A DNA stretch of 64,000 nucleotides from Guillardia theta CCMP2712 (taxonomy: Eukaryota; Protista; Cryptophyta): contig NW_005434654.1 in assembly GCF_000315625.1 (NCBI RefSeq), forward strand, positions 864,593 through 928,592. The letters run 5' to 3'. A program made the position numbers and the translations under genes. The notes under the pieces are model-generated. The model worked only from the letters and a program-made list of their open reading frames with translations, did not search any database and had not been told where the DNA came from. Positions 3,201-34,940 of this stretch are shown one piece after another; the stretch's first letter is position 1; each line of letters starts with the position of its first letter.

Positions 3201-4131
3201 TGATCACTTCAGAGCCGTTGACAAGATCTAAATCAAGCCCCTCCACCTCGTTGCACATCACAAACGCTCCCATTGCCAAAGCCTTGTACACCTGATACAT
3301 CCCTCCTCCTCTGCAGCGAGGAGTATCATCCTGTGACTCGGTGTTGCTCTCGAGGATGATGATGACAATCTTTGACTGTAAATACAATGACTTGAGTTCT
3401 TCTTCGATCAACCAGTCGCCTTGCAGTCGAAATCTGATCTGACTCTTTGATTTGAGAAAGGAATACAATGCACACACCAGAGTACGACTCTGTCGTTGAC
3501 TTCGGCAGCTTTCTTCTTCAAAATATGGGAAGTAAACAAGGATGTCATAAGAATATTCCGTATGAACGAGATGCTCTTCGTTATGGAGCATGTTCGCGCA
3601 TAAAGTGCTGCTAACATAACGTCCAAACCACTCAGGAGAGGAACCGAGTCTGAGCGACTCTTCAACCTCTGCATCCCAAAAATCCACAAGAAGTTGATCG
3701 AAGTGCAAGGGAGGCCAGTCAGAGGTCAAGTTCTGAACCGTGCGATGGAAATCAAACAGCACTGATACCGTATGAACCCCACGCGCCCTGCACTCCTGCA
3801 CAACTCGGAGCATATCTTTCGGAGCATGCCTTCCGGGAGAGTAGAAGAGGATGCTAGGGCTGAAGTTGTGTATGTGAGCTAAGATGTCTTTGACATCAAC
3901 TTCATCCTCCTGCAAGACCATCACCTCCTCTACCAGCGAGATGCGATCGAGGCCGTTGACCCAGCTCACATCCGGCGCCTCATGGCAGAGGCAGTCGCCA
4001 ATCCAGATCACTCGGATCAGGGAGCCGAAGGGAACTCCCGTGCCGCTCGAGAGGCCATGGGAGGATCTCCCTTGTACATTGAGAGCACATGATACCAGGA
4101 CTGATACGACCAACCCCCCCCAGCTCCGCAT
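201..4131 (-). CDS. Secreted/Golgi-type multi-domain glycosyltransferase-like protein (Glyco_trans_1_2/CgeB-like domain followed by GT61-like domain), multi-exon; 3' end uncertain, could be two genes
   Basis: ORF 2890-4131 begins with a signal peptide (MRSWGGLVVSVLVSCALNVQG) and contains LYLQSKIVIII...YKALAMGAFVMCNEVEGL...LVDHYLQDEGARLQIVQNAHASVCEHLS, typical of the Glyco_trans_1_2 family. Downstream same-strand exon 1176-1610 has QVAAAVSQASIIVTPHG, resembling the GT61 motif. Further same-strand exon-like pieces run to a TAG at 201-203. Confidence 0.55.
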
Positions 4132-5215: not shown

Positions 5216-5723
5216 GCTCCCCGTCTCCATTGCTCTGGGGGCAGTCCCTGTTTCCTCACCTTCGACGTTCTCGTCGATTCTGATGGTATACAAGTTTAGG
5301 TACCTTTGACAAGACTACCCCAGTCGTACCCACCACCACCCCTACCACACCGAGAAAAAAAAAAAAAGAATAACCAGTGGTACGCTATAGCCCTGCATTC
5401 TTGCCCTACCTTCTATTCCTCGAACTTCACCCCTCACCCCCCCTCATGCCCACCGTGAACCCTGGTCATCTCCCTGGTCATATTACCCCTGTCCGTAACG
5501 GCCCCCTTTATCCCCCCTTGAATCACCCCCACCTTCTAGCGCAAACTATTCCTCCATTATGGTTTACACCCCACACTACCCTACCCCATACGCAAGCTGT
5601 CATCATGTCGGTCGTAGTGAGTCCTAGGGGGCGTGCATAGTGCATACAAAAGCCAGGGTAGGTGATGTCCAAACTGAGGAAGAAGGGGGTAGGGGGTGGG
5701 AGGTCACAGACTACTGGGGAAGG

Positions 5724-13785: not shown

Positions 13786-16700
13786 TTAGTGGTCATGGTC
13801 TGCCAAGGACTTCATCAGCCGTGCTGTCATCTTCTTAGTCTTGCTGTACGCGTCCTGCACTGACAGTTACCTCTCCTGCTTCCTCCCTCCCTCCCTCCGC
13901 TCACCATCGCCCCGAGAAGCCGCACGTCTCCTTCCTCCACAAGTTTCCTGCACTTTGCTACCTCATCTTCGCCAAGGACGTCCTGTTGAGGCGCGTCAAC
14001 TTTGACAAACACGTCGCTGACTTACCTTGAAGTCTTGGAAAGTATCCGCATCCTCCGCTCCCTTGTGCTTGACAGGCGTCAGATCCTGCTCTGCCTGCAA
14101 GACATCCGCAGGCTGCACGAGCTCGCGAGCTCCGTGTCTTCTGTTAAGGGCAAATCGCCCGATCATGCAGAGAAGCTGTATCCCTACGGCAGCGACGGCG
14201 CACAGGATGGGAGCGAAGGTAAGCCAGTACTGGAGCGTCGTGTTGTCTGCGACACGGTGAGCTGCGGCAAGCGACCTGGGAGCTTCTCACCTGGAGGTGT
14301 GAAGCTTGCTTTGATGTTAACTTTCGTGTTCCCAGACCCGACCAGCCTCCTGGAGTTCTGCACGGACAGAGTCTGCGGGCTCAAGGATCGTCTGGCGGAG
14401 GCTCCGGCAGCCTGCAGCTGTTTGTTGGTCAGCGGCAAGAGTTCTGAGAGGCTCAAAACCTGCTCGTAGCACGCGTTCGCTCGAGCTTGTCCAGGATCCA
14501 TTTGCAGCGATCCGAGCCCCGAGGTGTCGAAGAAGCACTGGACGTAGGTAGAGTTGTGCTTGACCTGAGCAGCCGTCACCATCGAGCTGGAGGCAAGGAA
14601 GACGCACCTCAGGAACGAAGGAGCCCTCGTTGAAGGGGAAGTAGACGATCTGATATAAGCCGTAGTACGGGAGACCGGTAGCCGGGTTAGTGGAGGAACC
14701 AGATGGTCCGACGGCGTAGCTGATGGTGATACCAACGTTTGTGTCCTGATTCCCTCCCAAGCACGGCAAGGTTGCGTCGTTGCCGACAGTCTGGCACAGC
14801 TCGAAGACGATGTCTTCCGAGCCGCTGGGATAGGCTGTGGGGTCTACTCGTAGGAAGTTGCCGTACTTGTCTCTGGTTTGCACGTACAAGGTTGAAGTCG
14901 CACCGGCAACGACGTTGAGGAGATCTCCGTACACGTAGGTCAGCGCGATCTCAGCTGGAGCGCTGGCGATCTCGAGCATGAAAGGAGATCCAGCTCCGCT
15001 CACCCCGGCGAAGGAGATGGAGACCATGTAGCTTCCTGATTGCGTCAAGCGGTAGGTCGTGCCGTAGCTGCCGTCAGCGTTGTCGACGACGTTTCCTGTG
15101 TTGGGGGAGGCCGAGGGGTTGAGAGGAGCTTGAGAGACTACATTCCACAGCGTCAGCAGCACGGAGACGGAGTCTCCACCGGGCCTTCGGTTGAGAAACT
15201 CGTCTCGAGCAGTGATGATGAAGCTTGACGACGTTCCTGCCGTCGAGATGGTGAGGAAGGTTCCCCGCGCCACAGAAGAGGACGGGGAGGTGACTGCCGG
15301 GGACACCACGAGGGTGTATGGGTTTGGATTCGTCTGGCTTGCGCTCGCATCGCCAGCAATGAGGTCCTGGTACTCCTGCCCCCCATTGCCGACGTAGATG
15401 GAGATGGTGTAGGTTCCGGCCTTGACGGGCGAGTATGCGGACTGATAGCTTCCCGAGCCAAGGGAGATGGTGGACGGGGACATGCTGGGGAGGTTGGTCC
15501 CTGTGACGTCGATCCTGAATCTAGCTCCATCTGCGCTTCTACCGAAGACGTCCTGCAACAAGACCATCGCAGGTCACTAGCACGCGCTGACCTCCGGCAG
15601 GTCTCACCCGACACGACAGCGAGAAGAAGGATTTCGATCCTGCAACCGCAGCCGTGAGGCCATCGCCACTGGCGCGGCAGCTCTTGTAGAAAGGCGTCTT
15701 GGTCTGGAACACGAAGAGGTCGCTGCTGTCCTTGGGCACGTCATCGACCACTTGTGTCCCTCCCTGCCCACCACAGGCGTCAGCACACTTGCAGCTTGAG
15801 AGTCACTCGGCTCACGAAGATGTAGATGTAGAGGTTGATGCTGTCGAGCTTGATGCTAGACGCGATGCTGCCTGAAGGCTTGCTGCCCGGAACATCCACC
15901 TGAGAACCTTTCAGCATGCCGAGCGACAGGAGCAGGTCAGCGTACCAGCACCCATGTCAGGCTCGTCGTGCACTTGCCTTGTTGGACGCAGGTAGAGTCG
16001 AGGTTGGTAAGGTTGAGATACCTGGGCGAGCTTGGAGGTCAGAGAACCCTCGAGGTGCGGAGTCGCTGCGATCAGGTACCATAAGTCGTTGAACGCCGTC
16101 GCGTAGGTGGGGAAGTTTCCGTTCATCAGGTCGTACATGCCTGAGCCGACGCATCCTTTGGCGTTGCCGCATCCGAACCCTCCATACACCAGCAGAACCC
16201 CGTTGCTGCTCGCTGAGTTGGACATGGTGGTAACGGCAGCATCCCTCCTCGCCTGGGGGCAGGCGCCTCCAGTGTGGCATGAGGTGTAGAGCTTGGCAAA
16301 GGTCGCCTGCTTGGAAGAGAAGAAAGTCGTGTGGACGTCGGAGCTGAGGTCCCATGTCGCGGTTCTGTTGGCGAGGTCGGTGGACTCTCCGCCGAACATC
16401 ATCAGGAGGAGGAACTGGGCAACATGGTCTGAGCCAGGGCCGCGAGAGCTCAAGGGGACTCACCTTTCCCTGCAGGTTCACAGACACGGTCGAGTGTCCA
16501 TGCAGCGGCCCTGGCAGTGAGCAGCTGGAGGTGCCCGCAGTACAGCCAGTGGGGTTGGAGGAGCCATAGCAGTAGGTGACTGACGAGGGCGGGGAGGTGA
16601 AGTTCTGACAGATGCCTCTCATGCACGCGCCTGCACACAGATGAACCAGTCAAGTCAAGGACAAGAGGGCGCGAGCGAGGGCGCTTACCTGACTTGCAGG

Positions 16701-19700
16701 AGCTCAGCTGGGAAAACTGTGCTGCTCCTCCAATCATGTAGTACTGCCCCAGATAGCTTGTCTTGGACCAGGTGGAGGTCTGCAGGAAAGAGTTGTTTGT
16801 GGCGTACGACCGCGTCATGTAAGTCTGCAGACTGTTTTGCCAGGAGGATGAGTCACTCAGACGTGTCATGATCTGGCGGAAGAGATCGCTTCCGGTGACG
16901 AAGGTGATGTTCAACCTGCTGTTAGAGAGGACCTGTGCGTTCAAGTTGTAGATGTAGCTCATGGACGTGGTTGCTACTGGTGGGTACTGCGGAGAAGGGA
17001 AGAAGTTGCTGGAGACGAAGCCGTAGAAGGTGCTGGAGTCGAAGGACGAGGTGACACCATTGAGGATCAGCGAGATCGTGTATCCGTTGTCAATCTTCGC
17101 AGTGTCGAGGTACCAGAAGTCTCCCAGCGCTTGTCCGTTCACGTCCACCCCTCCATAGATCAGCCCGGCCTGACTTCCGGATATGAACGCATCGTTGATG
17201 ATGGTGTGCAGGCAGCGCGCAGGGATGACGCTGTAAGCGCCGCTAGTTTGAAAGATGAGCTTGAACTGAGAGAGCTGATTGTTGTTGAAGACCAAGATAG
17301 CTGACGTCGAGGTGACCTGGTTGCTGGAGTCAGCGACGGCCCCTCGAGCTGCGAACGTCAGGCCTGGTTTGAAGTTGTTCAAGATGCCGCCATGGGACAC
17401 GAGGACAGTAGCAGTCTGATTGGCCTGGAAGGTGGTGAAAGCGAAGTAGGTCTTGACCTCGCTCTTCAAGCTCTGGTCCACGTTGGTCCACGACCGGCTG
17501 AAGAGGTCAAACTTCCAGAGGTCGTTGAGTCCCTTCTGATTCTGAGTGCCGCCCATCATGACCAGGGTGTACTCGTTGAGGCTTGCCAGACCCGCGTAGC
17601 TTCGCGAGGGAGGGCCTTCGGCAAGGACAGGAAGGTTGGAGAGAGCCTGCGACAGGCTCGAGGAAGAGACATCTACAGTGTAGATACTGTTGCTGAGAGA
17701 GTTTTGCACGAAGCCTCCGAACAGAATCGCATGCGTGGAGTTGGACACTTGCGAGAAGAAGCTGTGCACTGCACCGCTCATGGTATACGCCACGCGTTTC
17801 CCCACCAGGTACTCCAAGGCGTCAATGGTCATCGGATCAGAGATGGACGTCGTCAAGGAGTAGTTGCCGATCAGGGCAAGCGGCAGGAACTGCGAAGACA
17901 AGCCCCCGATGGTGTAGGCTTGATAGCCGGACGCCAAGCTGGCGTACATTGACAAGCCGACTCTGCCCTGTCCGGACGGGTTGATCTCGAGGAGGGTGAA
18001 GGGGCTGAAGCCTTTGAGCGCCTTCTGCAGGTCGAGCATCCAGAGGTCGTTGAGGGGGCTCGTCAAAGCGACGCACACTTGACTGGCGCCTGATGTCGAG
18101 TAGGTCGCGCACCCGATGCCTCCGTATATCAAGAGTTTGCTCTTGGAGACGGCAGCGGTGGCATGCCCGAAGCGAGCTGGGATCCAGCTCAGATCGAACA
18201 CCGTCGGCGAGCAAGTCGCGGAGCCTCCTGGACAGATCTGAAGGAATGGAGCTCTAGACGCGAACTTGGAGCTGTTTGCTTGCGTGTGGGTCAAGTAGCG
18301 CTCGAAGTCCGTCAAGGAGCTCATGGCGGGTCGGGTGGTGGGTAGGATGGAAGGCATCTTGGTAGCGGTGCCGCCTCCCATCACGATGGTCGACGAGCTA
18401 TGAGCTTGTTGGCTCGTGTAGCAAACCTTCTCCCCGCATGACTTTCCTGCCCCTCCCATGTCGCAGCACGGAACAACTGTCGTCGGAGCCCAGTAGGAGT
18501 AGGAGGAGTTGAGCTTGACTAGTGCACTCGAGTCAAGGAAGGAGGAGGGAGGGTCGACAGTAGCCCAGCCTTGAAGCGAGTCGTTGTACAGCGAGATGGC
18601 TGAGTATCCAGGGAGACAGATCTGCAGCGTGTCGGATGAGACGCATCCTCCCTGTCGTCTCATGGCGCTCTGATCTAGCTGAAAGGTCACCCACCCTTGC
18701 ATGCTCGAGCCATGCCAGGAGAACTCCAAGCTCGTTTGCTCGAGCCCAGAGAACTGCGACGAGCTTGGCAACGAGTTGTACATGCGCCGATCAAACCCAT
18801 TCGCTGGCCAAGTGAGAGACACTCGGGGGTTGATGTTGTTTGTGGTTGAGAGGTTTGTGATGTAGAGTGTGTCTGTGGTTGTCGTCTCGTACTGCAGTTG
18901 TATCGTGTCTTGCGAGAGGATCCACTCGTTGGAGGCGAGCAGACCGTTGGAGTTGGAGTAGACGACTTTCTGACTCGCTGGGTTGTACCTGCACATGGCA
19001 GCAGACGGGAAGCGAGGAGGTTGAGCGGTAGCACGGTTCTTGAGCGTGAGAGAGATATTCAAGTACAGCTCTTGGTTGCCATCTTGCTGCATGTCCGTGA
19101 TGATGTAGAAGGAGATCGTGCCCGTGCTCTGAGTCCACAACACCTGACCTGCAGTCGAGCTGCCGCCTGTCGCACTTATTCCGTCGCAATTGGACTTACA
19201 GGAAGCCTGCGGGTTGTTGACTCCGCTCCAGCTGCAGTAGGTCGAGGTAGGAGCCTTGCAGCTCACGTTCAACAGCGTATCGTTGCCAGCAGTCTGAGAG
19301 CCCACGAGCCCGGTGATGGTCACGTCGGTTCCTCCAGGCTGATTAACTTTGAAACCGTTCGAGCCTTGGTTGCCCTGGCTGGAGGAGAAGACAAACGACA
19401 GGGTGATCTGGTTGTCTGCACCATGGAGTCTGGTGGTCTCGTCGCCAGTGAATGAGAAGGGATAGTATGGGCTGCAGGATGGAGGACCTTGAGCCTGATT
19501 GCTCTGACTGTTCGAGTTGCTATTTGCAGACGAGCCTGGATTGCTTCCAGAAGAAGACGAATTTGAAGAGTTCGTTTGAGAGCCATTATGCGGGTTTGGC
19601 TGCTCTGCAAGAAGTTCGTAACGTACTTCAGCTGAAGGGTCCAGACCAAGTGCCTTGAGCGTCCTCGAGCCTGAGCTTTTGACCCCCTCTCGCTTGCGCC

Positions 19701-22700
19701 CATCCATCACCTCTCGTACAAACGACTCAAGCTCATCGATGCTTCTCAAGTCCTTCTTGTAGAGGACATGAGCCAGTGTCTGCTTGTCGCTTTTGCTTCT
19801 GAGCTGGTTCAGGTCTCCCCGGTACTGACCTGGTTGCATGCTGGCCGAGATGTTGCAGTCGATGATCACTCGGTCGTCTTGGGTGTATGTGACGTCGCAG
19901 TACATGCTGGGTGTAGAGCTCGAGCCCGGGGCTTGAGTATCTGGTCCCTTTGGTGTAGTCTGAGTGCAGGGGCATACTTGCTGAAGGGGATACGTGCTGG
20001 AGCCCGGTACGTCACAGTGCGTTGAGTTCTTGAAGTAGCAGATTCCCTGGGTGCTGCAACATGGGTCCTTGGTATTGTTTCCGCAATGGGACACGGGACA
20101 GGCAGATGGGCAAGTCCCTACGCCCGACGAGACTGAAGGCATCCCTCCGTACACGCCCGACATGGTCTTGGGGTCAAAGCAAGAGCACGTCCAGCTGATG
20201 CAGTAGCTCGAGGGGCACCAGTCCGGAGCGAACGAGTTGGTCTTTCCAGGGCCGCACTTGGGAAGAAAAGGAGGGCCGCCATTCTGCGAGCAGATGACTC
20301 CTTCGTCGGTGTATCCGATGTTGGGGTTACAAACCGAGCACACCCGATACAGATTGGTCGGGCACAGACAGGCTGGCACGTCCTTGGGGCAGTTCGGTAT
20401 GTCCTGGCACTGGCAGATACCGGTCTGCGAGATCGCAGTCTGAAAGCTCGTATCGCTCATTTGAGAGGCTGCACAGTCCGTGTCAAAGTACTCGCAGTTC
20501 CCGAAGGTACACGAGTCTGCACGGGGGCAGCCCGAGCAGTAGTCCGTCAAGTTTTGACTTTGACACTCCGAGCCTCCGCCGGTAGCTGTGTTCACGACCA
20601 GACCATTGCGAATGGGTTGATCAAACGTCAGCTCGATCAGAAGCAGGCTGCTGTACGAGGACCCGACCGACGTGTTGTACATGCTCTCCTTGACAGGCTT
20701 GGCAACGTGATGCATCTGCACGTCGTAGTCCTGCCATCATCATCAGCACACTGGCCATCCCGCGCACACGCTCATCGCAGAGTCTTGAGAGCACCTGCAT
20801 GGGAAGCCCGCTCACAGGATCTCGTGCAGCCGGCGTCCGCTTGCCAGTCTTGTCCATGGGGTACAGAAAGGCGTAGGGGTTACAGCGCGAGGGATCAGAA
20901 AGATCCGGGCATGCGGGCCACCAAAGACGGAAGTTATCAATGTAGCCTTTGAACAGCTTGAGCGTCTCCGAGGCCGCCGGGTTTCCCCCTCCGATGTAGA
21001 TGTCGGAGATGCCCTGTGACAAGCGGAGGGAGTTGCTGATGTCAAGAGACAAGAAGTTCCTTCCCTGCTCTGACACGCTGCTGCCGTCAAGAAACATGAA
21101 TGCTTGCGTCAGCACAGCGTCGGGATAGGGGTTGGTCTGTGAGTAGAGCCTACCAAACCTCAGCGTGAAGCACACATGGTGCCACACGCCCAGCACGCTG
21201 CTTGGTATCGGGCCCCAAGTCTTCACCACCACGTCCTGACTATCCGGCAAGAGCGTCAGCCTCACGAAGAGACTGTTGCCCGAGGCATAAACAGTCCAGC
21301 GCAGCAACGACAGTACCCCGTTGTAGGCATCAAGCAGCACAACGCCAGCTGGATCTTGGCTTTGAAGTTGTACCCACATGTCGATCCACAGCGTCCCCAA
21401 GCCCGTCGATGACTGGCACCTACACACCCGTCATGCAGGACCTCGCGCATCAGCTGCTGGCTTACCAGGAAGGCAGGGTCATGGCTATGATGCTGGTGAT
21501 CCCATCGAAGCTTGCCATCTTGTCTTTGGCGCTCGACTCCTGAGACATCCAGCCCTCTGTCAGTACCAAGCATCGCTCTCACGAGCAGGCGCTTACCGCT
21601 TCTGCCGAGTCCATGACCCACAAGTCATTCCTGGGCTGAGGGAGGTTGCAGCTCCCTTGCTTGCCCGGACAGTCGATGGACGCTCCTCCGAACAAGACGA
21701 TGGGCTTCAAGTACTGTCCGAACGACTCCATGACTGTCAGGGTAGCGAACGCGCGATCCGTCGGCCACGAGCTTGCTGTTTGAACCTGCTTCCATTCCAG
21801 GGTGAACATGCTCAGACTCCACATCGTGCTGGTGCTCTGGAACCCCGGGATAGACCCGGCTGCGTTCGAGCATTGAGACCCTGCTAGTCGAAGACCGCCG
21901 AAGACAAACTGGTATGATCCCTCGCTCGTGTACGCCGCAAACACGAGCGGCTCGGGGGCGTACACCTGAAGCGGCTTGGCCGCGCACGAGGCATCCGTAC
22001 CGTAGATGCATCGCCAAGTCTGAGCAGAAAGATCGAGGGCCCAGAGGTCTTGGAAGATCTCCTGCTCAGACATCCCTTGAGCAACGTACATGGTCGATGA
22101 CGTCGAGTCATAGAACGCGACGTGCCCACACCGAGCCGAGGGGCTGTTTCCGGTCTGCAGCGCTGCAGCAGCGTATCAGACACTCGACCAGCAAGGGCGC
22201 AGCCCCGCCCGTCACCTGACTGCCAGCCGCTGGATGTCTTGAACAAGGCCAGGTGACCAGCCGCCAAGGAGTCCTTGTCAAGACCGCCGAAGATCATCAC
22301 CTCCGTCGAAGAGATTACGCCGCTCGATATGTAGCTCGCGAGCGGCGACGCGTCTGACGACCCGTACTGACTCCACACGAGAGTCAGGATGTCGAACATC
22401 CATGTATCCGACAGGACCTGTGACATGTACATCAGCGCATGGCGCCATGACCCCGCCAGCATCCCCGACACGAGAGTCCAAGACTTACCGAGGATGCTCC
22501 CACGCCTTCGGGGCCTTGCCCGCCGTGTACATAGATCTGAAACCCGGCCATCCACATGGCGTGGTATGCTCGAGCCGATGGTGAGGCCGAGATGGGCATG
22601 ATTTCTACCCATCGCGCGGCTGATCGATTGGTGTACTGCTTGAGCACCCAGAAGCTGGACTGAGGGGTCTGCGATTCCCCATCGTCTACTATCCCGTCAA

Positions 22701-23550
22701 AGACAAAGAGCTCCTGCAGACTGACATGGAATGCACTGGCGTGCCCATGCCGAGGATGGGGGAGTAGAGAGCTTGTGGGGTTGCAGCTGCTCCATGTCCG
22801 CGTGGTAGGAGAGGACACGTTGAGGTACCAGCAGTCGTTCAGACTCTTGCCCACGGCCATCCCCACTCCCCCGAAGACGAAAACAACTTGATTCCTGTCG
22901 TCATATGCCATGCTATGGCCGTACCGGTTCTCGGGCCCAGGCCCGTCGAACCGCATCGGGTCCCACGTGGGTTGCGGGCTGATGATAAACCTCCAGCAGT
23001 CTAGCAGCCCTCTCCCCATGGATGATTTCTGCGGTGTCGCGAAGCCTCCGCACAGGAGGGCCGACGCCCCCACCGATATCATCGTATGCTGTGCACGCGG
23101 GCCGGGGACATGCCGGTTGATGGTGCTCGCAGCACACTGAGCATCGTAGATCGTATGGTTCGGGAAGAAGACTACTTCCTCCCAGCTGTTGGCTGCCGAG
23201 TCATACTTCCAAGTATCCCCAAGCACTACCATGGCGCTTCCTATGTTGTTGATCCTGCAAGCAGTACAGTGAGTCGCACGGGGCAGTGCAGGTCAGGCTT
23301 GTACATACCCGCCATGGAGGAAGACGAAGCCTTCAGAAGTGCTGAGCGTTGTAGTGGCGTAAGCGTAGCGAGGGGACGGACCGGATCCACCGGGCTGGAT
23401 GAGCTGCCATTGGAGAGCTAGAGGGAAGAGGGGTTAAGCAGGCACAGGATGGGGGGCAGGCAGCCGGTACTTACGGAGGGCGAAGGTAGAGACGGAGAGA
23501 GACAAGACAAGGAGGAGTCGGAATCTTATTGTGCTTCGATAATTTCTCAT
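13786..23550 (-). CDS. Giant kelch/LamG/Cys-rich/filamin type-I membrane protein, short-linker copy (A); ~18 exons, ~3,000 aa
   Basis: ATG at 23550 gives MRNYRSTIRFRLLLVLSLSVSTFA-LPLQW (signal peptide). Kelch motifs (PSPRYAY, VFVFGG, NDCW, PARFGHA, LNDLW), LamG-like (GVWHHVCFTL...FKGYIDNFRLW), Cys-rich block, filamin-type repeats (FIITARDEFLNRRPGGD, VVDNADGSYGTTY), TM (WLTFAPILCAVAAVGIQLLCMIG), tail ending ...MKSLADHDH* with TAA at 13786-13788. Confidence 0.85.
13793..23508. repeat. Left arm of giant inverted repeat (9.7 kb)
   Basis: Reverse complement of 24663-34888. Paired coordinates sum to 48171 in the inner block and 48684 in the outer block (48681 at the far end after two small intronic indels); mirrored ORFs are visible throughout the ORF track. 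Confidence 0.97.
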
Positions 23551-24626
23551 TTCCTTTTTTCGGGAGTGTGGAATCGGCAATGAATTTAAACAACAATCAG
23601 GTTACAAGAGCGCAGGTCACGGAAGAAAATGCAGTGAAGAACAATGGAGAATTAATTGATTAGTGGAAAAATTTGTAGCGCATGGTTATCTTCATGCATT
23701 TTTCTTCTCCGTTCTCCTTGTTCTACCCATCCTGATCAGGCCATGATATCGGTATTTTAACTGCTGTGAGGGACGCAAATGGTTGTAGTGAGGATCGAAT
23801 TGATGAAAATATTTCTCTTTTGGAAATCAGTGAAATGTGAAGTGTGACTATGATTGAAATTTAGTACAGATATTTGAAAATTTTGCCATTGCAAGATTCG
23901 TGATTTTGCAACGATTTCGAAGAAAGGATCCATCATTTGGCTTTAAGTAATATTTTACAGTACCAAGAGCTTGAATGGTTTTACTCCTGGCCTGCAAATC
24001 GGAAGGGTCATTTTTCCGGACGGGGTCAGATCACAATTGAGTTGATAGATGAGGTGCTGATTTTTAACTTAACTTTGAGTAAAAGATGAGGTGCTAGTTA
24101 TTACTACTGACTCAGTGAATAACTGCTTTTTTCTTTTTCTTGTCTGCGGGCCCCGAAAGACCCCCGTAAAGTGCCCGGCAGGTACCCCTAGACACCCCTA
24201 CCCCCTACCCCACCCCCCGCTCCCCTATCCTTCATGTAAAAGTCACCAGGTATACTTCAATGTTAAAGTCCCAGTGTGACTTATCGGTTCCAGCAACCCT
24301 ACCCCATGGATCGAGGTAAAACTGACCCCTCCCTTGCTCCTCTCCCCTCGCATTTTCCGCACAATCAAACCGCGATCATGTCCCCGTTGTCTCAGTCATC
24401 CCAGCCTCCTTTGAGCTTCAGGCACGAAGCAAACACTCATTGACTACATTCATCCAAGTTGATTCCTTACCAGTCCACGACTAGTTGCTTCAAAAACATC
24501 CTATCTCAATATCTAACAGTTCTCGAACAAGAACTGATACTTTAGGAACACATCACTTTTGTAGAGATTCCTTGCGGGTAAGACATGTATTGAATACAGA
24601 CTTCGTGCTGAAACCAATACCCGAGA
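23551..24626. promoter_or_regulatory. Unique 1.08-kb divergent (bidirectional) promoter region between the two start codons
   Basis: AT-richer non-coding spacer directly upstream of both ATGs (23550 minus, 24627 plus). No long ORF. Role inferred from position only. Confidence 0.6.
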
Positions 24627-27600
24627 ATGACAGAATATAATACTATCTTTGAAACAATCATCGTCTTGTCTCTCTCCGTCTCTACCTTCGCCCTCCGTAA
24701 GTACCGGCTGCCTGCCCCCCATCCTGTGCCTGCTTAACCCCTCTTCCCTCTAGCTCTCCAATGGCAGCTCATCCAGCCCGGTGGATCCGGTCCGTCCCCT
24801 CGCTACGCCTACGCCACTACAACGCTCAGCACTTCTGAAGGCTTCGTCTTCCTCCATGGCGGGTATGTACAAGCCTGACCTGCACTCCCCCGTGCGACTC
24901 ACTGTACTGCTTGCAGGATCAACAACATAGGAAGCTCCATGGTAGTGCTTGGGGATACTTGGAAGTATGACTCGGCAGCCAACAGCTGGGAGGAAGTAGT
25001 CTTCTTCCCGAACCATACGATCTACGATGCTCAGTGTGCTGCGAGCACCATCAACCGGCATGTCCCCGGCCCGCGTGCACAGCATACGATGATATCGGTG
25101 GGGGCGTCGGCCCTCCTGTGCGGAGGCTTCGCGACACCGCAGAAATCATCCATGGGGAGAGGGCTGCTAGACTGCTGGAGGTTTATCATCAGCCCGCAAC
25201 CCACGTGGGACCCGATGCGGTTCGACGGGCCTGGGCCCGAGAACCGGTACGGCCATAGCATGGCATATGACGACAGGAATCAAGTTGTTTTCGTCTTCGG
25301 GGGAGTGGGGATGGCCGTGGGCAAGAGTCTGAACGACTGCTGGTACCTCAACGTGTCCTCTCCTACCACGCGGACATGGAGCAGCTGCAACCCCACAAGC
25401 TCTCTACTCCCCCATCCTCGGCATGGGCACGCCAGTGCATTCCATGTCAGTCTGCAGGAGCTCTTTGTCTTTGACGGGATAGTAGACGATGGGGAATCGC
25501 AGACCCCTCAGTCCAGCTTCTGGGTGCTCAAGCAGTACACCAATCGATCAGCCGCGCGATGGGTAGAAATCATGCCCATCTCGGCCTCACCATCGGCTCG
25601 AGCATACCACGCCATGTGGATGGCCGGGTTTCAGATCTATGTACACGGCGGGCAAGGCCCCGAAGGCGTGGGAGCATCCTCGGTAAGTCTTGGACTCTCG
25701 TGTCGGGGATGCTGGCGGGGTCATGGCGCCATGCGCTGATGTACATGTCACAGGTCCTGTCGGATACATGGATGTTCGACATCCTGACTCTCGTGTGGAG
25801 TCAGTACGGGTCGTCAGACGCGTCGCCGCTCGCGAGCTACATATCGAGCGGCGTAATCTCTTCGACGGAGGTGATGATCTTCGGCGGTCTTGACAAGGAC
25901 TCCTTGGCGGCTGGTCACCTGGCCTTGTTCAAGACATCCAGCGGCTGGCAGTCAGGTGACGGGCGGGGCTGCGCCCTTGCTGGTCGAGTGTCTGATACGC
26001 TGCTGCAGCGCTGCAGACCGGAAACAGCCCCTCGGCTCGGTGTGGGCACGTCGCGTTCTATGACTCGACGTCATCGACCATGTACGTTGCTCAAGGGATG
26101 TCTGAGCAGGAGATCTTCCAAGACCTCTGGGCCCTCGATCTTTCTGCTCAGACTTGGCGATGCATCTACGGTACGGATGCCTCGTGCGCGGCCAAGCCGC
26201 TTCAGGTGTACGCCCCCGAGCCGCTCGTGTTTGCGGCGTACACGAGCGAGGGATCATACCAGTTTGTCTTCGGCGGTCTTCGACCAGCAGGGTCTCAATG
26301 CTCGAACGCAGCCGGGTCTATCCCGGGGTTCCAGAGCACCAGCACGATGTGGAGTCTGAGCATGTTCACCCTGGAATGGAAGCAGGTTCAAACAGCAAGC
26401 TCGTGGCCGACGGATCGCGCGTTCGCTACCCTGACAGTCATGGAGTCGTTCGGACAGTACTTGAAGCCCATCGTCTTGTTCGGAGGAGCGTCCATCGACT
26501 GTCCGGGCAAGCAAGGGAGCTGCAACCTCCCTCAGCCCAGGAATGACTTGTGGGTCATGGACTCGGCAGAAGCGGTAAGCGCCTGCTCGTGAGAGCGATG
26601 CTTGGTACTGACAGAGGGCTGGATGTCTCAGGAGTCGAGCGCCAAAGACAAGATGGCAAGCTTCGATGGGATCACCAGCATCATAGCCATGACCCTGCCT
26701 TCCTGGTAAGCCAGCAGCTGATGCGCGAGGTCCTGCATGACGGGTGTGTAGGTGCCAGTCATCGACGGGCTTGGGGACGCTGTGGATCGACATGTGGGTA
26801 CAACTTCAAAGCCAAGATCCAGCTGGCGTTGTGCTGCTTGATGCCTACAACGGGGTACTGTCGTTGCTGCGCTGGACTGTTTATGCCTCGGGCAACAGTC
26901 TCTTCGTGAGGCTGACGCTCTTGCCGGATAGTCAGGACGTGGTGGTGAAGACTTGGGGCCCGATACCAAGCAGCGTGCTGGGCGTGTGGCACCATGTGTG
27001 CTTCACGCTGAGGTTTGGTAGGCTCTACTCACAGACCAACCCCTATCCCGACGCTGTGCTGACGCAAGCATTCATGTTTCTTGACGGCAGCAGCGTGTCA
27101 GAGCAGGGAAGGAACTTCTTGTCTCTTGACATCAGCAACTCCCTCCGCTTGTCACAGGGCATCTCCGACATCTACATCGGAGGGGGAAACCCGGCGGCCT
27201 CGGAGACGCTCAAGCTGTTCAAAGGCTACATTGATAACTTCCGTCTTTGGTGGCCCGCATGCCCGGATCTTTCTGATCCCTCGCGCTGTAACCCCTACGC
27301 CTTTCTGTACCCCATGGACAAGACTGGCAAGCGGACGCCGGCTGCACGAGATCCTGTGAGCGGGCTTCCCATGCAGGTGCTCTCAAGACTCTGCGATGAG
27401 CGTGTGCGCGGGATGGCCAGTGTGCTGATGATGATGGCAGGACTACGACGTGCAGATGCATCACGTTGCCAAGCCTGTCAAGGAGAGCATGTACAACACG
27501 TCGGTCGGGTCCTCGTACAGCAGCCTGCTTCTGATCGAGCTGACGTTTGATCAACCCATTCGCAATGGTCTGGTCGTGAACACAGCTACCGGCGGAGGCT

Positions 27601-30600
27601 CGGAGTGTCAAAGTCAAAACTTGACGGACTACTGCTCGGGCTGCCCCCGTGCAGACTCGTGTACCTTCGGGAACTGCGAGTACTTTGACACGGACTGTGC
27701 AGCCTCTCAAATGAGCGATACGAGCTTTCAGACTGCGATCTCGCAGACCGGTATCTGCCAGTGCCAGGACATACCGAACTGCCCCAAGGACGTGCCAGCC
27801 TGTCTGTGCCCGACCAATCTGTATCGGGTGTGCTCGGTTTGTAACCCCAACATCGGATACACCGACGAAGGAGTCATCTGCTCGCAGAATGGCGGCCCTC
27901 CTTTTCTTCCCAAGTGCGGCCCTGGAAAGACCAACTCGTTCGCTCCGGACTGGTGCCCCTCGAGCTACTGCATCAGCTGGACGTGCTCTTGCTTTGACCC
28001 CAAGACCATGTCGGGCGTGTACGGAGGGATGCCTTCAGTCTCGTCGGGCGTAGGGACTTGCCCATCTGCCTGTCCCGTGTCCCATTGCGGAAACAATACC
28101 AAGGACCCATGTTGCAGCACCCAGGGAATCTGCTACTTCAAGAACTCAACGCACTGTGACGTACCGGGCTCCAGCACGTATCCCCTTCAGCAAGTATGCC
28201 CCTGCACTCAGACTACACCAAAGGGACCAGATACTCAAGCCCCGGGCTCGAGCTCTACACCCAGCATGTACTGCGACGTCACATACACCCAAGACGACCG
28301 AGTGATCATCGACTGCAACATCTCGGCCAGCATGCAACCAGGTCAGTACAGGGGAGACCTGAACCAGCTCAGAAGCAAAAGCGACAAGCAGACACTGGCT
28401 CATGCCCTCTACAAGAAGGACTTGAGAAGCATCGATGAGCTTGAGTCGTTTGTACGAGAGGTGATGGATGGGCGCAAGCGAGAGGGGGTCAAAAGCTCAG
28501 GCTCGAGGACGCTCAAGGCACTTGGTCTAGACCCTTCAGCTGAAATAAGTTACCAGCTAGATGTCCTTCATCCGTCTGCCAATCACAATGGAACTGCCAC
28601 AACGACAACGTCGTCGAACAGCTCGTCGTCTTCGTCATCATCGAACAGCTCGTCGTCTTCGTCATCATCGAACAGCTCGTCGTCTTCGTCATCATCGAAC
28701 AGCTCGTCGTCTTCGTCATCATCGAACAGCTCGTCGTCTTCGTTGTCATCGAACAGCTCGTCGTCTTCGTCGTCATCGAACAGCTCATCGTCGTCGTCAT
28801 TGTCGAATACATCATCCACCGGTTCGGTGAGCAAGCATACCACCAGTGATTCATCCTCAAACTCGTCTTCTGCCAGTTCGTCGAACCATACTGCTAATAC
28901 CAGCTCCACCACTACCTCAAATGACAAGACAACTACAATAAGTGGAGGTCAATCGTCCGGTGAATCATCAGGCAACAGCTCAAACACCAGCACTACTTCA
29001 AATGACCAGACGAACAATGTTGGAAACTCTCATTTGCCAGCAAGTAACTCAGAGTCAGAATTGTCCACCAACAGCACAACCTCAAATCATTCATCGTCAA
29101 AAAATAACCATACTACAGGCTTGTCTGAATCTTCTGGAAGCAATCCAGGCTCGTCTGCAAATAGCAATTCGAACAGTCAGAGCAATCAGGCTCAAGGTCC
29201 TCCATCCTGCAGCCCATACTATCCCTTCTCATTCACTGGCGACGAGACCACCAGACTCCATGGTGCAGACAACCAGATCACCCTGTCGTTTGTCTTCTCC
29301 TCCAGCCAGGGCAACCAAGGCTCGAACGGTTTCAAAGTTAATCAGCCTGGAGGAACCGACGTGACCATCACCGGGCTCGTGGGCTCTCAGACTGCTGGCA
29401 ACGATACGCTGTTGAACGTGAGCTGCAAGGCTCCTACCTCGACCTACTGCAGCTGGAGCGGAGTCAACAACCCGCAGGCTTCCTGTAAGTCCAATTGCGA
29501 CGGAATAAGTGCGACAGGCGGCAGCTCGACTGCAGGTCAGGTGTTGTGGACTCAGAGCACGGGCACGATCTCCTTCTACATCATCACGGACATGCAGCAA
29601 GATGGCAACCAAGAGCTGTACTTGAATATCTCTCTCACGCTCAAGAACCGTGCTACCGCTCAACCTCCTCGCTTCCCGTCTGCTGCCATGTGCAGGTACA
29701 ACCCAGCGAGTCAGAAAGTCGTCTACTCCAACTCCAACGGTCTGCTCGCCTCCAACGAGTGGATCCTCTCGCAAGACACGATACAACTGCAGTACGAGAC
29801 GACAACCACAGACACACTCTACATCACAAACCTCTCAACCACAAACAACATCAACCCCCGAGTGTCTCTCACTTGGCCAGCGAATGGGTTTGATCGGCGC
29901 ATGTACAACTCGTTGCCAAGCTCGTCGCAGTTCTCTGGGCTCGAGCAAACGAGCTTGGAGTTCTCCTGGCATGGCTCGAGCATGCAAGGGTGGGTGACCT
30001 TTCAGCTAGATCAGAGCGCCATGAGACGACAGGGAGGATGCGTCTCATCCGACACGCTGCAGATCTGTCTCCCTGGATACTCAGCCATCTCGCTGTACAA
30101 CGACTCGCTTCAAGGCTGGGCTACTGTCGACCCTCCCTCCTCCTTCCTTGACTCGAGTGCACTAGTCAAGCTCAACTCCTCCTACTCCTACTGGGCTCCG
30201 ACGACAGTCGTGCCGTGCTGCGACATGGGAGGGGCAGGAAAGTCATGCGGGGAGAAGGTTTGCTACACGAGCCAACAAGCTCATAGCTCGTCGACCATCG
30301 TGATGGGAGGCGGCACCGCTACCAAGATGCCTTCCATCCTACCCACCACCCGACCCGCCATGAGCTCCTTGACGGACTTCGAGCGCTACTTGACCCACAC
30401 GCAAGCAAACAGCTCCAAGTTCGCGTCTAGAGCTCCATTCCTTCAGATCTGTCCAGGAGGCTCCGCGACTTGCTCGCCGACGGTGTTCGATCTGAGCTGG
30501 ATCCCAGCTCGCTTCGGGCATGCCACCGCTGCCGTCTCCAAGAGCAAACTCTTGATATACGGAGGCATCGGGTGCGCGACCTACTCGACATCAGGCGCCA

Positions 30601-33600
30601 GTCAAGTGTGCGTCGCTTTGACGAGCCCCCTCAACGACCTCTGGATGCTCGACCTGCAGAAGGCGCTCAAAGGCTTCAGCCCCTTCACCCTCCTCGAGAT
30701 CAACCCGTCCGGACAGGGCAGAGTCGGCTTGTCACTGTACGCCAGCTTGGCGTCCGGCTATCAAGCCTACACCATCGGGGGCTTGTCTTCGCAGTTCCTG
30801 CCGCTTGCCCTGATCGGCAACTACTCCTTGACGACGTCCATCTCTGATCCGATGACCATTGACGCCTTGGAGTACCTGGTGGGGAAACGCGTGGCGTATA
30901 CCATGAGCGGTGCAGTGCACAGCTTCTTCTCGCAAGTGTCCAACTCCACGCATGCGATTCTGTTCGGAGGCTTCGTGCAAAACTCTCTCAGCAACAGTAT
31001 CTACACTGTAGATGTCTCTTCCTCGAGCCTGTCGCAGGCTCTCTCCAACCTTCCTGTCCTTGCCGAAGGCCCTCCCTCGCGAAGCTACGCGGGTCTGGCA
31101 AGCCTCAACGAGTACACCCTGGTCATGATGGGCGGCACTCAGAATCAGAAGGGACTCAACGACCTCTGGAAGTTTGACCTCTTCAGCCGGTCGTGGACCA
31201 ACGTGGACCAGAGCTTGAAGAGCGAGGTCAAGACCTACTTCGCTTTCACCACCTTCCAGGCCAATCAGACTGCTACTGTCCTCGTGTCCCATGGCGGCAT
31301 CTTGAACAACTTCAAACCAGGCCTGACGTTCGCAGCTCGAGGGGCCATCGCTGACTCCAGCAACCAGGTCACCTCGACGTCAGCTATCTTGGTCTTCAAC
31401 AACAATCAGCTCTCTCAGTTCAAGCTCATCTTTCAAACTAGCGGCGCTTACAGCGTCATCCCTGCGCGCTGCCTGCACACCATCATCAACGATGCGTTCA
31501 TATCCGGAAGTCAGGCCGGGCTGATCTATGGAGGGGTGGACGTGAACGGACAAGCGCTGGGAGACTTCTGGTACCTCGACACAGCGAAGATTGACAACGG
31601 ATACACGATCTCGCTGATCCTCAATGGTGTCACCTCGTCCTTCGACTCCAGCACCTTCTACGGCTTCGTCTCCAGCAACTTCTTCCCTTCTCCGCAGTAC
31701 CCACCAGTAGCAACCACGTCCATGAGCTACATCTACAACTTGAATGCACAAGTCCTCTCTAACAGCAGGTTGAACATCACCTTCGTCACCGGAAGCGATC
31801 TCTTCCGCCAGATCATGACACGTCTGAGTGACTCATCCTCCTGGCAAAACAGTCTGCAGACTTACATGACGCGGTCGTACGCCACAAACAACTCTTTCCT
31901 GCAGACCTCCACCTGGTCCAAGACAAGCTATCTGGGGCAGTACTACATGATTGGAGGAGCAGCACAGTTTTCCCAGCTGAGCTCCTGCAAGTCAGGTAAG
32001 CGCCCTCGCTCGCGCCCTCTTGTCCTTGACTCGACTGGTTCATCTGTGTGCAGGCGCGTGCATGAGAGGCATCTGTCAGAACTTCACCTCCCCGCCCTCG
32101 TCAGTCACCTACTGCTATGGCTCCTCCAACCCCACTGGCTGTACTGCGGGCACCACCAGCTGCTCACTGCCAGGGCCGCTGCATGGACACTCGACCGTGT
32201 CTGTGAACCTGCAGGGAAAGGTGAGTCCCCTTGAGCTCTCGCGGCCCTGGCTCAGACCATGTTGCCCAGTTCCTCCTCCTGATGATGTTCGGCGGAGAGT
32301 CCACCGACCTCGCCAACAGAACCGCGACATGGGACCTCAGCTCCGACGTCCACACGACTTTCTTCTCTTCCAAGCAGGCGACCTTTGCCAAGCTCTACAC
32401 CTCATGCCACACTGGAGGCGCCTGCCCCCAGGCGAGGAGGGATGCTGCCGTTACCACCATGTCCAACTCAGCGAGCAGCAACGGGGTTCTGCTGGTGTAT
32501 GGAGGGTTCGGATGCGGCAACCCCAAAGGATGCGTCGGCTCAGGCATGTACGACCTGATGAACGGAAACTTCCCCACCTACGCGACGGCGTTCAACGACT
32601 TATGGTACCTGATCGCAGCGACTCCGCACCTCGAGGGTTCTCTGACCTCCAAGCTCGCCCAGGTATCTCAACCTTACCAACCTCGACTCTACCTGCGTCC
32701 AACAAGGCAAGTGCACGACGAGCCTGACATGGGTGCTGGTACGCTGACCTGCTCCTGTCGCTCGGCATGCTGAAAGGTTCTCAGGTGGATGTTCCGGGCA
32801 GCAAGCCTTCAGGCAGCATCGCGTCTAGCATCAAGCTCGACAGCATCAACCTCTACATCTACATCTTCGTGAGCCGAGTGACTCTCAAGCTGCAAGTGTG
32901 CTGACGCCTTTGGTGGGCAGGGAGGGACACAAGTGGTCGATGACGTGCCCAAGGACAGCAGCGACCTCTTCGTGTTCCAGACCAAGACGCCTTTCTACAA
33001 GAGCTGCCGCGCCAGTGGCGATGGCCTCACGGCTGCGGTTGCAGGATCGAAATCCTTCTTCTCGCTGTCGTGTCGGGTGAGACCTGCCGGAGGTCAGCGC
33101 GTGCTAGTGACCTGCGATGGTCTTGTTGCAGGACGTCTTCGGTAGAAGCGCAGATGGAGCTAGATTCAGGATCGACGTCACAGGGACCAACCTCCCCAGC
33201 ATGTCCCCATCCACCATCTCCCTTGGCTCGGGAAGCTATCAGTCCGCATACTCGCCCGTCAAGGCCGGAACCTACACCATCTCCATCTACGTCGGCAAAG
33301 GGGGGCAGGAGTACCAGGACCTCATTGCCGGCGATGCGAGCGCAAGCCAGACGAATCCAAACCCATACACCCTCGTGGTGTCCCCGGCAGTCACTTCCCC
33401 GTCCTCTTCTGTGGCGCGGGGAACCTTCCTCACCATCTCGACGGCAGGAACGTCGTCAAGCTTCATCATCACTGCTCGAGACGAGTTTCTCAACCGAAGG
33501 CCCGGTGGAGACTCCGTCTCCGTGCTGCTGACGCTGTGGAATGTAGTCTCTCAAGCTCCTCTCAACCCCTCGGCCTCCCCCAACACAGGAAACGTCGTCG

Positions 33601-34940
33601 ACAACGCTGACGGCAGCTACGGCACGACCTACCGCTTGACGCAATCAGGAAGCTACATGGTCTCCATCTCCTTCGCCGGGGTGAGCGGAGCTGGATCTCC
33701 TTTCATGCTCGAGATCGCCAGCGCTCCAGCTGAGATCGCGCTGACCTACGTGTACGGAGATCTCCTCAACGTCGTTGCCGGTGCGACTTCAACCTTGTAC
33801 GTGCAGACCAGAGACAAGTACGGCAACTTCATACGAGTAGACCCCACAGCCTATCCCAGCGGCTCGGAAGACATCGTCTTCGAGCTGTGCCAGACTATCG
33901 GCAACGACGCAACCTTGCCGTGCTTGGGAGGGAATCAGGACACAAACGTTGGTATCACCATCAGCTACGCCGTCGGACCATCTGGTTCCTCCACTAACCC
34001 GGCTACCGGTCTCCCGTACTACGGCTTATATCAGATCGTCTACTTCCCCTTCAACGAGGGCTCCTTCGTTCCTGAGGTGCGTCTTCCTTGCCTCCAGCTC
34101 GATGGTGACGGCTGCTCAGGTCAAGCACAACTCTACCTACGTCCAGTGCTTCTTCGACACCTCGGGGCTCGGATCGCTGCAAATGGATCCTGGACAAGCT
34201 CGAGCGAACGCGTGCTACGAGCAGGTTTTGAGCCTCTCAGAACTCTTGCCGCTGACCAACAAACAGCTGCAGGCTGCCGGAGCCTCCGCCAGACGATCCT
34301 TGAGCCCGCAGACTCTGTCCGTGCAGAACTCCAGGAGGCTGGTCGGGTCTGGGAACACGAAAGTTGACATCAAAGCAAGCTTCACACCTCCAGGTGAGAA
34401 GCTCCCAGGTCGCTTGCCGCAGCTCACCGTGTCGCAGACAACACGACGCTCCAGTACTGGCTTACCTTCGCTCCCATCCTGTGCGCCGTCGCTGCCGTAG
34501 GGATACAGCTTCTCTGCATGATCGGGCGATTTGCCCTTAACAGAAGACACGGAGCTCGCGAGCTCGTGCAGCCTGCGGATGTCTTGCAGGCAGAGCAGGA
34601 TCTGACGCCGGTCAAGCACAAGGGAGCGGAGGATGCGGATACTTTCCAAGACTTCAAGGTGAAGTCGGCGACGTGTTTGTCAAAGTTGACGCGCCTCAAC
34701 AGGACGTGCTTGGCGAAGATGAGGTAGCAAAGTGCAGGAAACTTGTGGAGGAAGGAGACGTGCGGCTTCTCGGGGCGATGGTGAGCGGAGGGAGGGAGGA
34801 AGCAGGAGAGGTAACTGTCAGTGCAGGACGCGTACAGCAAGACTAAGAAGATGACAGCACGGCTGATGAAGTCCTTGGCAGACCATGAAGAATCAACGGT
34901 TACACATTTGAGAATCCCTCCGTCGGCATGTGTTGAGTAG
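24627..34940 (+). CDS. Giant kelch/LamG/Cys-rich/filamin type-I membrane protein, long-linker copy (B); ~18 exons, ~3,150 aa
   Basis: ATG at 24627 gives MTEYNTIFETIIVLSLSVSTFA-LPLQW in frame. About 17 GT-AG introns (e.g. 24697-24753, 24863-24916, 27377-27440, 31996-32053, 34659-34702, 34781-34826). Same domains as copy A plus a 171-aa longer Ser/Asn/Thr linker. Ends ...MKSLADHEESTVTHLRIPPSACVE* (TAG 34938-34940). Confidence 0.85.
24663..34888. repeat. Right arm of giant inverted repeat (10.2 kb)
   Basis: Matches the reverse complement of 13793-23508 except for the segment 28545-29129 and scattered substitutions. Confidence 0.97.
28614..28808 (+). repeat. Coding 27-bp tandem repeat (TCGAACAGCTCGTCGTCTTCGTCATCA) x7 encoding SNSSSSSSS
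   Basis: Units start at 28614, 28641, 28668, 28695, 28722, 28749 and 28776; the first four are identical and the last three degenerate. Confidence 0.95.

Follow-up and report, generated by a model that had tools for sequence, protein, structure and literature searches.

We report a very large gene in Guillardia theta CCMP2712 that, in our reading and with moderate confidence, underwent a young, lineage-specific, partial inverted duplication. In this reading the original and expressed gene (copy A, 9.7 kb) lies head to head with an end-truncated copy of itself (copy B). The window is the whole stretch of DNA that was analysed, 64,000 nucleotides long, and the features in it are as follows.

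13786..23550, minus strand: copy A, the expressed gene, read as parental; CDS of 2,946 aa in 18 exons (RNA contig of X8, open CDS, relatives' contigs L013, L015 and L016)
24627..34940, plus strand: copy B, read as the derived inverted copy; ORF of 3,130 aa (open CDS, unrelated ends, linker block absent from RNA assemblies, no B junction in relatives)
13793..23508, no strand: left arm of the inverted repeat (BLAST, repeat search, global alignment)
24663..34888, no strand: right arm of the inverted repeat (BLAST, repeat search, global alignment)
23509..24662, no strand: unique spacer, 1,154 bp, 42% G+C (covered by L015; its two halves are unrelated)
19555..19617, minus strand: short linker block of copy A, 21 codons (global alignment; same type in relatives L014 and L015)
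28554..29129, plus strand: long Ser/Thr/Asn-rich linker block of copy B, 192 codons (same type in relative L016)
34458..34526, plus strand: predicted single transmembrane helix WLTFAPILCAVAAVGIQLLCMIG, followed by a short cytoplasmic tail (read from the sequence; the same helix is encoded in A)

BLAST of the two sides of the locus against each other showed an inverted repeat of ~21 kb in which 13793-23508 is the reverse complement of 24663-34888, and a repeat search agreed. The match consists of an outer segment (13793-19554 against 34888-29130, 99.51% identity, 23 mismatches, 2 gap openings) and an inner segment (19618-23508 against 28553-24663, 99.77% identity, 9 mismatches). Global alignment of the arms gave 32 substitutions, a 1-nt indel (14023/34661) and a 4-nt indel (13895-13898/34787), both intronic, and one replaced block where 63 nt in A (19555-19617) stand against 576 nt in B (28554-29129). 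Identity between the copies starts at codon 15 of A (ATG at 23550, minus strand) and at codon 13 of B (ATG at 24627). It stops inside both last exons, 6 nt ahead of the stop codon of A (13786-13788) and 52 nt short of the end of the stop codon of B (34938-34940). An earlier note, made from the letters alone, had described a near-perfect inverted repeat with scattered differences whose limits fall just inside the coding ends of two complete genes, and all of this was borne out (99.5-99.8% identity, both copies open in frame under one common model). The spacer holds the promoter side of A, the first 14 codons of A and the chance start of B. Alignment against shuffled sequences and BLAST both found no homology above chance between the two spacer halves.

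Because the DNA run X2 (2021) breaks into contigs exactly at both spacer/arm junctions of the strain itself, because its arms have about twice the depth of the unique parts, and because G. theta reportedly has a haploid nuclear genome (PMC4007541), the repeat is not an artefact of assembly. The X2 contigs covering 23479-24083 and 24061-24692 each end 30 nt within an arm. The arm contigs reached depths of 137.7 and 126.2, the two spacer halves 50.9 and 50.5, and the block of B 68.8; both the short and the long version of the block are present in this independent run. The earlier note had asked for a check by read depth; the contig depths of X2 support two copies. An artefact, whether a fold-back chimera or a head-to-head join of two haplotypes, could draw on a 532-nt piece, 99.8% identical to B, that adjoins a 100-N gap on another scaffold and shows that the assembly is not flawless. 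It could also draw on the fact that a 35-nt element of very high depth, at which short-read contigs break, is the only link between the spacer halves. Against this, the two halves are contiguous in the relative contig L015, the window is free of N, and the unrelated flanks of A and B show that they are not alleles of one locus, which together with the reported haploidy (PMC4007541) rules out a haplotype merge. We consider an artefact hardly credible.

One GT-AG model with 17 introns was applied to both copies. A spliced RNA contig confirmed 7 of the 17 introns; the other 10 are predicted and fit the alignment to the paralogue P0156, and one of them also fits the protein P0003 of Hanusia phi, which is 87% identical and has no contig on record. 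One intron was placed at 33077-33131 rather than 33070-33169 by its fit to P0156 and P0003. The product is a predicted giant type I surface protein with, in order, kelch propellers, a LamG-like domain, a Ser-rich linker, a further kelch region, filamin/Ig repeats and one membrane helix. Pfam matched kelch/ATRN-type propellers (PF24981, PF24681) and filamin repeats, with a weak LamG-like match. Attractin/MEGF8-like proteins, which contain the same propeller families, are likewise large type I membrane proteins with kelch beta-propellers and Ig-like/filamin repeats. Attractin and MEGF8 join the kelch propeller to CUB, EGF, PSI and C-type lectin modules, whereas the Pfam search of the protein did not return this combination and found neither a CUB nor a C-type lectin domain; what the protein has instead is a mucin-like linker rich in Ser, together with filamin repeats. 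The resemblance is one of architecture only.

To place the ends of the two copies, we compared them with each other and with metagenome contigs of wild relatives (1.5-2.9% diverged). Outside the arms, local alignments of A with B were no better than with shuffled sequences, and BLAST at word size 7 gave zero collinear matches. A related pair of signal-peptide starts was considered and rejected, as alignment of the 60 and 120 nt just upstream of the arms scored lower than the mean of shuffled sequences. The first 12 and last 17 codons of B are flanking DNA and match nothing in A or in the gene ends of relatives. By contrast, the relatives' contigs contain the start of A (MRNY...), the upstream spacer, the stop codon and the 3' flank. 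L013 aligns to A from 19551 to 13473 at 97.4% and extends 320 nt into its 3' flank, and L016, which has the long block, extends 145 nt into the same flank. L015 covers 24485-24258 and 24043-23509 of the spacer and continues unbroken through the start of A into the arm, and a contig of X9 passes 23508/23509 unbroken. On this comparison A keeps the ancestral start, stop and flanks, the spacer is the ancestral upstream region of A, and the ends of B are recruited from unrelated flanking DNA.

None of the relatives' contigs retrieved (L013, L015, L016 and the X9 contig) has a B junction, and there is no fork at the arm boundaries; L015 ends at 24485, 178 nt short of the expected empty site (24662 joined to 34889). 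Only two relative proteins with the first kelch exon were present in the searched collection, one per sample, both on A-type contigs. We infer from the unbroken contigs that B is absent from the relatives. These contigs, and the linkage in L016 described below, weigh less because metagenome contigs may be chimeras of co-occurring strains; L014 is relative-like and then reference-like over its last ~300 nt. Other searches added no further contig. A scan of JGI metagenome contigs with the first kelch exon gave no relative, and exact look-up of ten window ORFs (flanks, spacer, arms) in the collection gave none. A search with the DUF2838 neighbour toward the right flank of the relatives gave nothing beyond the protein of the window itself and a transcript of Hanusia phi, and no contig, and look-up of the small ORFs of L015 and L016 returned only L015 and L016 themselves. 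The search with the 1,594-aa exon protein gave no match; its words were drawn from the first 500 residues, which are of low complexity, and its length window excluded the ORFs of relatives.

The copies differ by 0.33% (range 0.23-0.40%), as compared with 1.5-2.9% between them and the relatives. Against the relatives they have 221 differences in common, and ~31 sites distinguish A from B, with derived states on both (12 in A, 19 in B). Arm divergence far below orthologue divergence fits a converted palindrome, but recent duplication predicts the same. The differences are not evenly spread: there is at most one in 3,413 nt of the 5' arm and there are 23 in the 5.76-kb 3' arm (P = 1.6e-5). This is too uneven for plain accumulation of mutations, so some recombination, either allelic or arm-to-arm, shaped the pair. 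An allelic crossover in A explains the pattern equally well as conversion tracts. In the exons the A-B differences (15 synonymous, 13 non-synonymous) give a dN/dS of ~0.3, which suggests constraint on both lineages and counts against a young silent copy.

The linker block has a different history from the sequence around it. The long block, which carries 7.2 copies of a 27-nt repeat at 28614-28807, is also present and open in frame in the relative L016. Both block types occur in the relatives, where blocks group by type and flanks by lineage, so that the clustering predicted in the earlier note held up for the internal segment. The short/long split is thus old and was already present in the species complex. 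L014 (short block) and L016 (long block) were both assembled from sample ERZ930071. Because the long block of L016 is followed by an A-type 3' flank, an old allelic dimorphism fits better than old paralogues, and the dimorphism is probably allelic in nature.

Transcripts were found for A. The spliced RNA contig of X8 (4,973 nt, depth 402) has the 5' UTR of A, the variants of A and the short block, and is A-type at every diagnostic site; the transcript extends to at least 23744. X6, X7 and X8 contain ~0.49 of the words from 22000-26200. As a comparison, long-block words had a share of 0.00-0.02 across 14 Logan runs that were presumed to be RNA (6 studies, several runs of only ~1 M letters). Judged by this block in RNA assemblies, copy B is apparently silent. 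It may be expressed weakly or under other conditions, since contigs show presence and not absence, and raw RNA reads of X20, few in number, do map to 24500-24699. The N-terminus encoded by B has zero positive charge and makes a poor signal peptide.

These data are consistent with the following order of events. B would have arisen in inverted orientation 1.15 kb upstream of A, lacking the promoter and 5' UTR of A as well as its first 14 codons and, at the other end, its last 2 codons and stop. Its reading frame would have been completed by a chance ATG at the start and a chance stop in flanking DNA. B would still be intact because it is young, and the arms near-identical because their common ancestor is recent (0.33% as compared with 2.4-2.9% to wild relatives). 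The old linker dimorphism most likely entered the pair by recombination, either because A underwent a crossover or conversion with a short-block allele, by which its block and 3' part were replaced, or because B was copied from a long-block allele. The earlier note held that a single recent duplication was unlikely to leave two intact genes. This argument falls away because an in-frame ATG ahead of the breakpoint is expected in ~1 in 4 cases and a downstream stop is certain, so that an end-truncated copy that looks complete is not improbable. Young local duplicates, both direct and inverted, are found elsewhere on the same contig.

The main competitor to this young partial duplicate is an old palindrome, in which A and B are paralogues throughout the species complex, arm-to-arm conversion homogenises the arms, the unpairable linker block escapes, and the B of the relatives was not assembled or retrieved. 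We regard this as unlikely. In its favour, converted paralogues are predicted to show just this grouping of blocks by type and of flanks by lineage, the uneven arm differences fit it, and B shares alleles with the long-block L016 at 32032 and 32155, 3 kb downstream of the block. Sample ERZ930071 yielded both block types. In sample ERZ930064 the assembly graph forks beside the block, where L013 begins 3 nt inside its right edge with an exact k = 127 overlap to L015, and a fork there is also what a second copy would produce. Yet the relatives' contigs, chimeric as metagenome contigs can be, run unbroken across the inner and outer boundaries of the arms and both edges of the block and show only the A-type locus, with the long-block contig itself ending in A-type flank. 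The unique termini have no residual homology, even in the first 12-14 codons, and neither the undetected transcription of the block of B nor its poor signal peptide suits a maintained second gene. The earlier proposal that old paralogues had merely let their termini escape conversion does not agree with these ends, since those of A are the ancestral gene ends in relatives and those of B are non-homologous. Ongoing arm-to-arm conversion fares better in part: recombination of some kind is supported, but it may be allelic. A single gene in relatives, with unrelated flanking DNA at the ends of one copy, is what the earlier note had named as speaking against it; the second is the case for B, and the first is suggested by the unbroken contigs.

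The locus could also be a programmed device for surface variation, with silent B as a donor cassette, or with recombination between the arms flipping the spacer so that the promoter and start of A drive the long-linker body. The geometry would permit this, as one active promoter lies in the spacer, flanked by identical inner arms of 3.9 kb, and linker and tail set the two bodies apart. B, apparently silent, keeps an open reading frame, and a relative has kept the long block open in frame. Such a locus should give both variants from a clonal population; zero RNA assemblies of the strain contain long-block words against a depth of 402 for the A transcript in X8, the single long transcript contig is A-type throughout, and the second copy is apparently missing from relatives. 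We know of no recombinase or switch site at the locus. We consider a programmed switch very improbable, and the broader idea of a two-cassette locus, where expressed gene and silent inverted partner exchange by spacer flip or conversion and the dimorphism is kept as paralogues rather than alleles in all related lineages, improbable. The undescribed, self-homogenising two-variant locus of the earlier note is best read as an ordinary young duplicate beside a working gene.

Ampliconic palindromes of primate sex chromosomes are inverted pairs homogenised by conversion. A conversion-homogenised adjacent pair, hsp16 of C. elegans, is cited as a 3.8-kb inverted repeat with a 416-bp spacer (PMC3966223). 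Like these, the Guillardia pair has large inverted arms (9.7 and 10.2 kb) separated by a short unique spacer; the arms are far more alike than orthologues are, and their differences are unevenly spread. Unlike them, it lacks the occurrence in related species that proves conversion, as relatives show the A-type locus only, and in those systems both genes are expressed. Mosquito ace-1 exemplifies 'permanent heterozygote' duplications, which bring two alleles of a polymorphism together on one chromosome. The short and long linkers, two old variant classes that look allelic in relatives, are similarly adjacent in one haploid genome, but here nothing indicates that both are expressed or that the pair is favoured by selection. 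The closest parallel is 'partial duplication with recruitment', as in fog-2 from ftr-1 of C. elegans (reviewed in PMC3966223), where too the breakpoint lies in a terminal exon, the frame is completed from neighbouring DNA, the parent keeps the ancestral ends and the copies are adjacent and little diverged. In contrast to that type, the copy here is truncated at both ends, inverted and very large (9.7 kb, 3,000 aa), with expression undetected. A literature search on inverted duplications or gene conversion in Guillardia found nothing specific.

The locus offers a clean, datable case of inverted duplication of a very large gene, in which the breakpoints fall within the coding ends of the gene itself, and illustrates why an end-truncated copy can still look intact. 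Two old length classes of the Ser-rich linker in wild populations may point to selection on an exposed stalk. Many young local duplicates, often inverted, are suggested by a 200-kb sample, which points to a genome-wide mutational habit rather than a special device at this locus.

We compared the two sides of the locus by BLAST and global alignment, and the inverted repeat that the earlier note had placed at 13786-34940 is real. BLAST matched 13793-19554 with 34888-29130 (99.51% identity) and 19618-23508 with 28553-24663 (99.77%) around a spacer of unique sequence (23509-24662). In the global alignment copies A and B differ by 32 substitutions, one 1-nt indel, one 4-nt indel and one replaced block. 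Both indels lie in introns; of the differences in exons, 15 are synonymous and 13 non-synonymous.

Coding sequences, and the replaced block from the global alignment
23550 to 13786, minus strand: copy A coding sequence, 2,946 aa
24627 to 34940, plus strand: copy B coding sequence, 3,130 aa
19555-19617: replaced block in A, 63 nt
28554-29129: replaced block in B, 576 nt

Both copies are open under one set of 17 GT-AG introns. Seven are fixed by a spliced contig from the RNA run X8 (4,973 nt, depth 402), in which the A transcript extends to 23744. The other ten are predicted from splice signals and alignment to a 3,118-aa paralogue (P0156), and one of these also fits a Hanusia phi protein (P0003). 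The protein comprises kelch propellers, a weak LamG-like match, a Ser-rich linker, a second kelch region, filamin repeats, one membrane helix and a short tail. The genome has only four other paralogues, which are dispersed and 38-43% identical. A paralogue groups with protein EKX40328.1 of G. theta CCMP2712, and of the named relatives the nearest are transcripts of Hanusia phi.

It is very unlikely that the repeat is an assembly artefact. The window contains no N (the assembly is 87.1 Mb in 669 pieces), and four runs were compared over 23300-29299. In X2, an independent DNA run of 2021, contigs 23479-24083 and 24061-24692 each extend 30 nt into an arm and stop, which is what an arm common to two copies should give, and both block versions are present. 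Read depth, proposed earlier as a check for mis-assembly, agrees over this interval, with arm contigs at 137.7 and 126.2, spacer halves at 50.9 and 50.5 and the B block at 68.8; the arm-to-spacer ratio above 2 may be accounted for by the G+C contrast (spacer 42%, arms 58%). The two spacer halves are also contiguous in a relative's contig. Merged alleles would be another form of artefact, but the A and B flanks are unrelated, so the copies cannot be alleles of one locus. The nuclear genome of G. theta is reported to be haploid (PMC4007541).

Metagenome contigs of wild relatives, found through exon-sized proteins, indicate which ends are ancestral. L013 matches A from 19551 to 13473 at 97.4%, including 320 nt of the A 3' flank, and its match to B stops at 34888; L016 also extends into the A 3' flank. 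L015 spans spacer 24485-24258 and 24043-23509 and then runs unbroken into the A start (MRNY...) and arm, and a contig from run X9 spans 23508/23509 without a break. Because these contigs continue across the arm boundaries into A-type ends, the start, stop and flanks of A are, on this sequence comparison, those of the original gene. The ends of B have no similarity to those of A beyond chance; its N-terminus carries two acidic residues but no basic ones, whereas that of A has four basic residues. The B ATG lies 12 codons before the breakpoint, with an in-frame stop another 6 codons upstream. By chance an ATG would precede a stop in about a quarter of cases, and a stop must always follow downstream, so the earlier argument that a single duplication would be unlikely to leave two intact genes fails.

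The linker block exists in two types in the block-region alignment: short in A, L014 and L015, with the leading motif AEVRYELLAE, and long in B and L016 (open in frame in L016), with AEISYQLDVLHPSANH. Sequence flanking the block groups instead by lineage, with L015 and L016 in one group and A, B and L014 in the other. This is the signature predicted for arm-to-arm conversion, with the variable segment sorting by type and shared sequence by genome. However, L016 has a long block yet its 3' end lies in A-type flank, no relative contig retrieved breaks at an arm boundary, and the cluster of kelch-exon proteins includes only one contig per sample. The simplest reading is that the relatives have one locus at which the short and long blocks would be old alleles; this linker dimorphism is the one point of moderate interest. 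L014 differs from the window by ~2.4% over 3.2 kb, but it becomes nearly identical to A in the final ~300 nt, which take in the short block (L014:3250-3666 against window 19900-19502); either the lineages have recombined naturally or the contig is chimeric.

A and B have 221 differences from the relatives in common and are themselves separated at ~31 sites, where the derived state falls on A at 12 and on B at 19.

Pairwise divergence
A and B: 0.23-0.40%
A or B and L017: 1.5-1.6%
A or B and L013-L016: 2.4-2.9%
L013 and L016: 0.69%
L014 and L015: 0.82%

The structure is real, and we think it somewhat probable that B is a young partial duplicate, a duplicate of an ordinary kind. Among described cases it most resembles partial duplicates that take in neighbouring sequence, and inverted pairs lying side by side that undergo conversion (PMC3966223). 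The alternative of an old palindrome seems unlikely. Our confidence is set at these levels because L015 ends 178 nt short of the expected empty site (24662 joined to 34889), metagenome contigs, including those that run unbroken, may be chimeric, and there is a fork beside the block. This fork is marked by L013, which starts 3 nt inside the right edge of the block and has an overlap of exactly 127 nt with L015, and is expected from either two alleles or two copies.

The A-B differences are uneven. The 3,413 nt of 24937-28349 hold at most one where 11 are expected (P = 1.6e-5), and the 3' arm holds 23. At three of these 23 sites L013 and L016 also differ from each other (P = 5e-4), and at two of the three B has the allele of long-block L016. 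A single event in which A recombined with a short-block allele across the block and the 3' part, by meiotic crossover or by conversion, would account at once for the differing blocks, the gradient and the polymorphisms shared with relatives. Alternatively, the 5' part may have undergone arm-to-arm conversion. Three of the four differences in the inner 3.7 kb form a 128-nt cluster, 146-274 nt from the inner junction, and their polarity is mixed (derived on both copies).

Clustered differences, window position in B (in A)
24809 (23362)
24887 (23284)
24936 (23235)

The X8 transcript contig is A-type at all diagnostic sites and has the short block. The share of B long-block words is 0.46-0.85 in the strain's DNA runs and 0.00-0.02 in every run guessed to be RNA, including X6, X7 and X8, which nevertheless hold ~0.49 of the words of 22000-26200. 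Under the conditions sampled, expression of B is thus apparently absent or at least 100-fold below that of A. X20 has a small number of raw RNA-Seq reads on 24500-24699, too few to count.

In the spacer, ~35 nt at 24057-24092 reach a depth of 19,215 in X2, compared with ~51 around them, and 768 in X9. Every short-read contig is interrupted at this point, with many different loose ends, and L015 carries 263 nt that do not align where the window has 24044-24257. The stretch may be a short element present in very many copies, or it may match organelle DNA by chance. The 3.2 kb from the B stop to the DUF2838 gene contain no convincing ORF.

Neighbouring genes
2890-4131: glycosyltransferase-like ORF
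5640-7463: Na+/H+ exchanger
38175-39740: DUF2838 protein (glycerophosphocholine acyltransferase by name in some relatives)
62474-63844: kinesin motor

Elsewhere in the assembly, a 532-nt piece (G000:C78:152318-152849; L003:1501-2032) matches B 31694-32224 at 99.8% identity and A at 99.1%. It adjoins a 100-N scaffold gap followed by a GC-rich tract, and is probably a stray assembly piece and possibly a third fragment. Twenty 10-kb pieces of the window's contig contained a 1.8-kb direct duplicate (99.6%) and inverted duplicates of 468 nt (98.9%), 428 nt (93%) and at least 392 nt (99.7%; the repeat meets the piece end).

Young local duplicates on this contig, upstream of the window
L020:6750-9997
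L030:1907-6310
L032:1-5191

Close relatives of the strain (97-98.5%) occur in metagenomes with freshwater or lake-water labels and in project PRJEB17505 (runs X9, X10, X12, X14, X16 and X26; contigs L013-L017), which is unexpected if the strain is marine G. theta.
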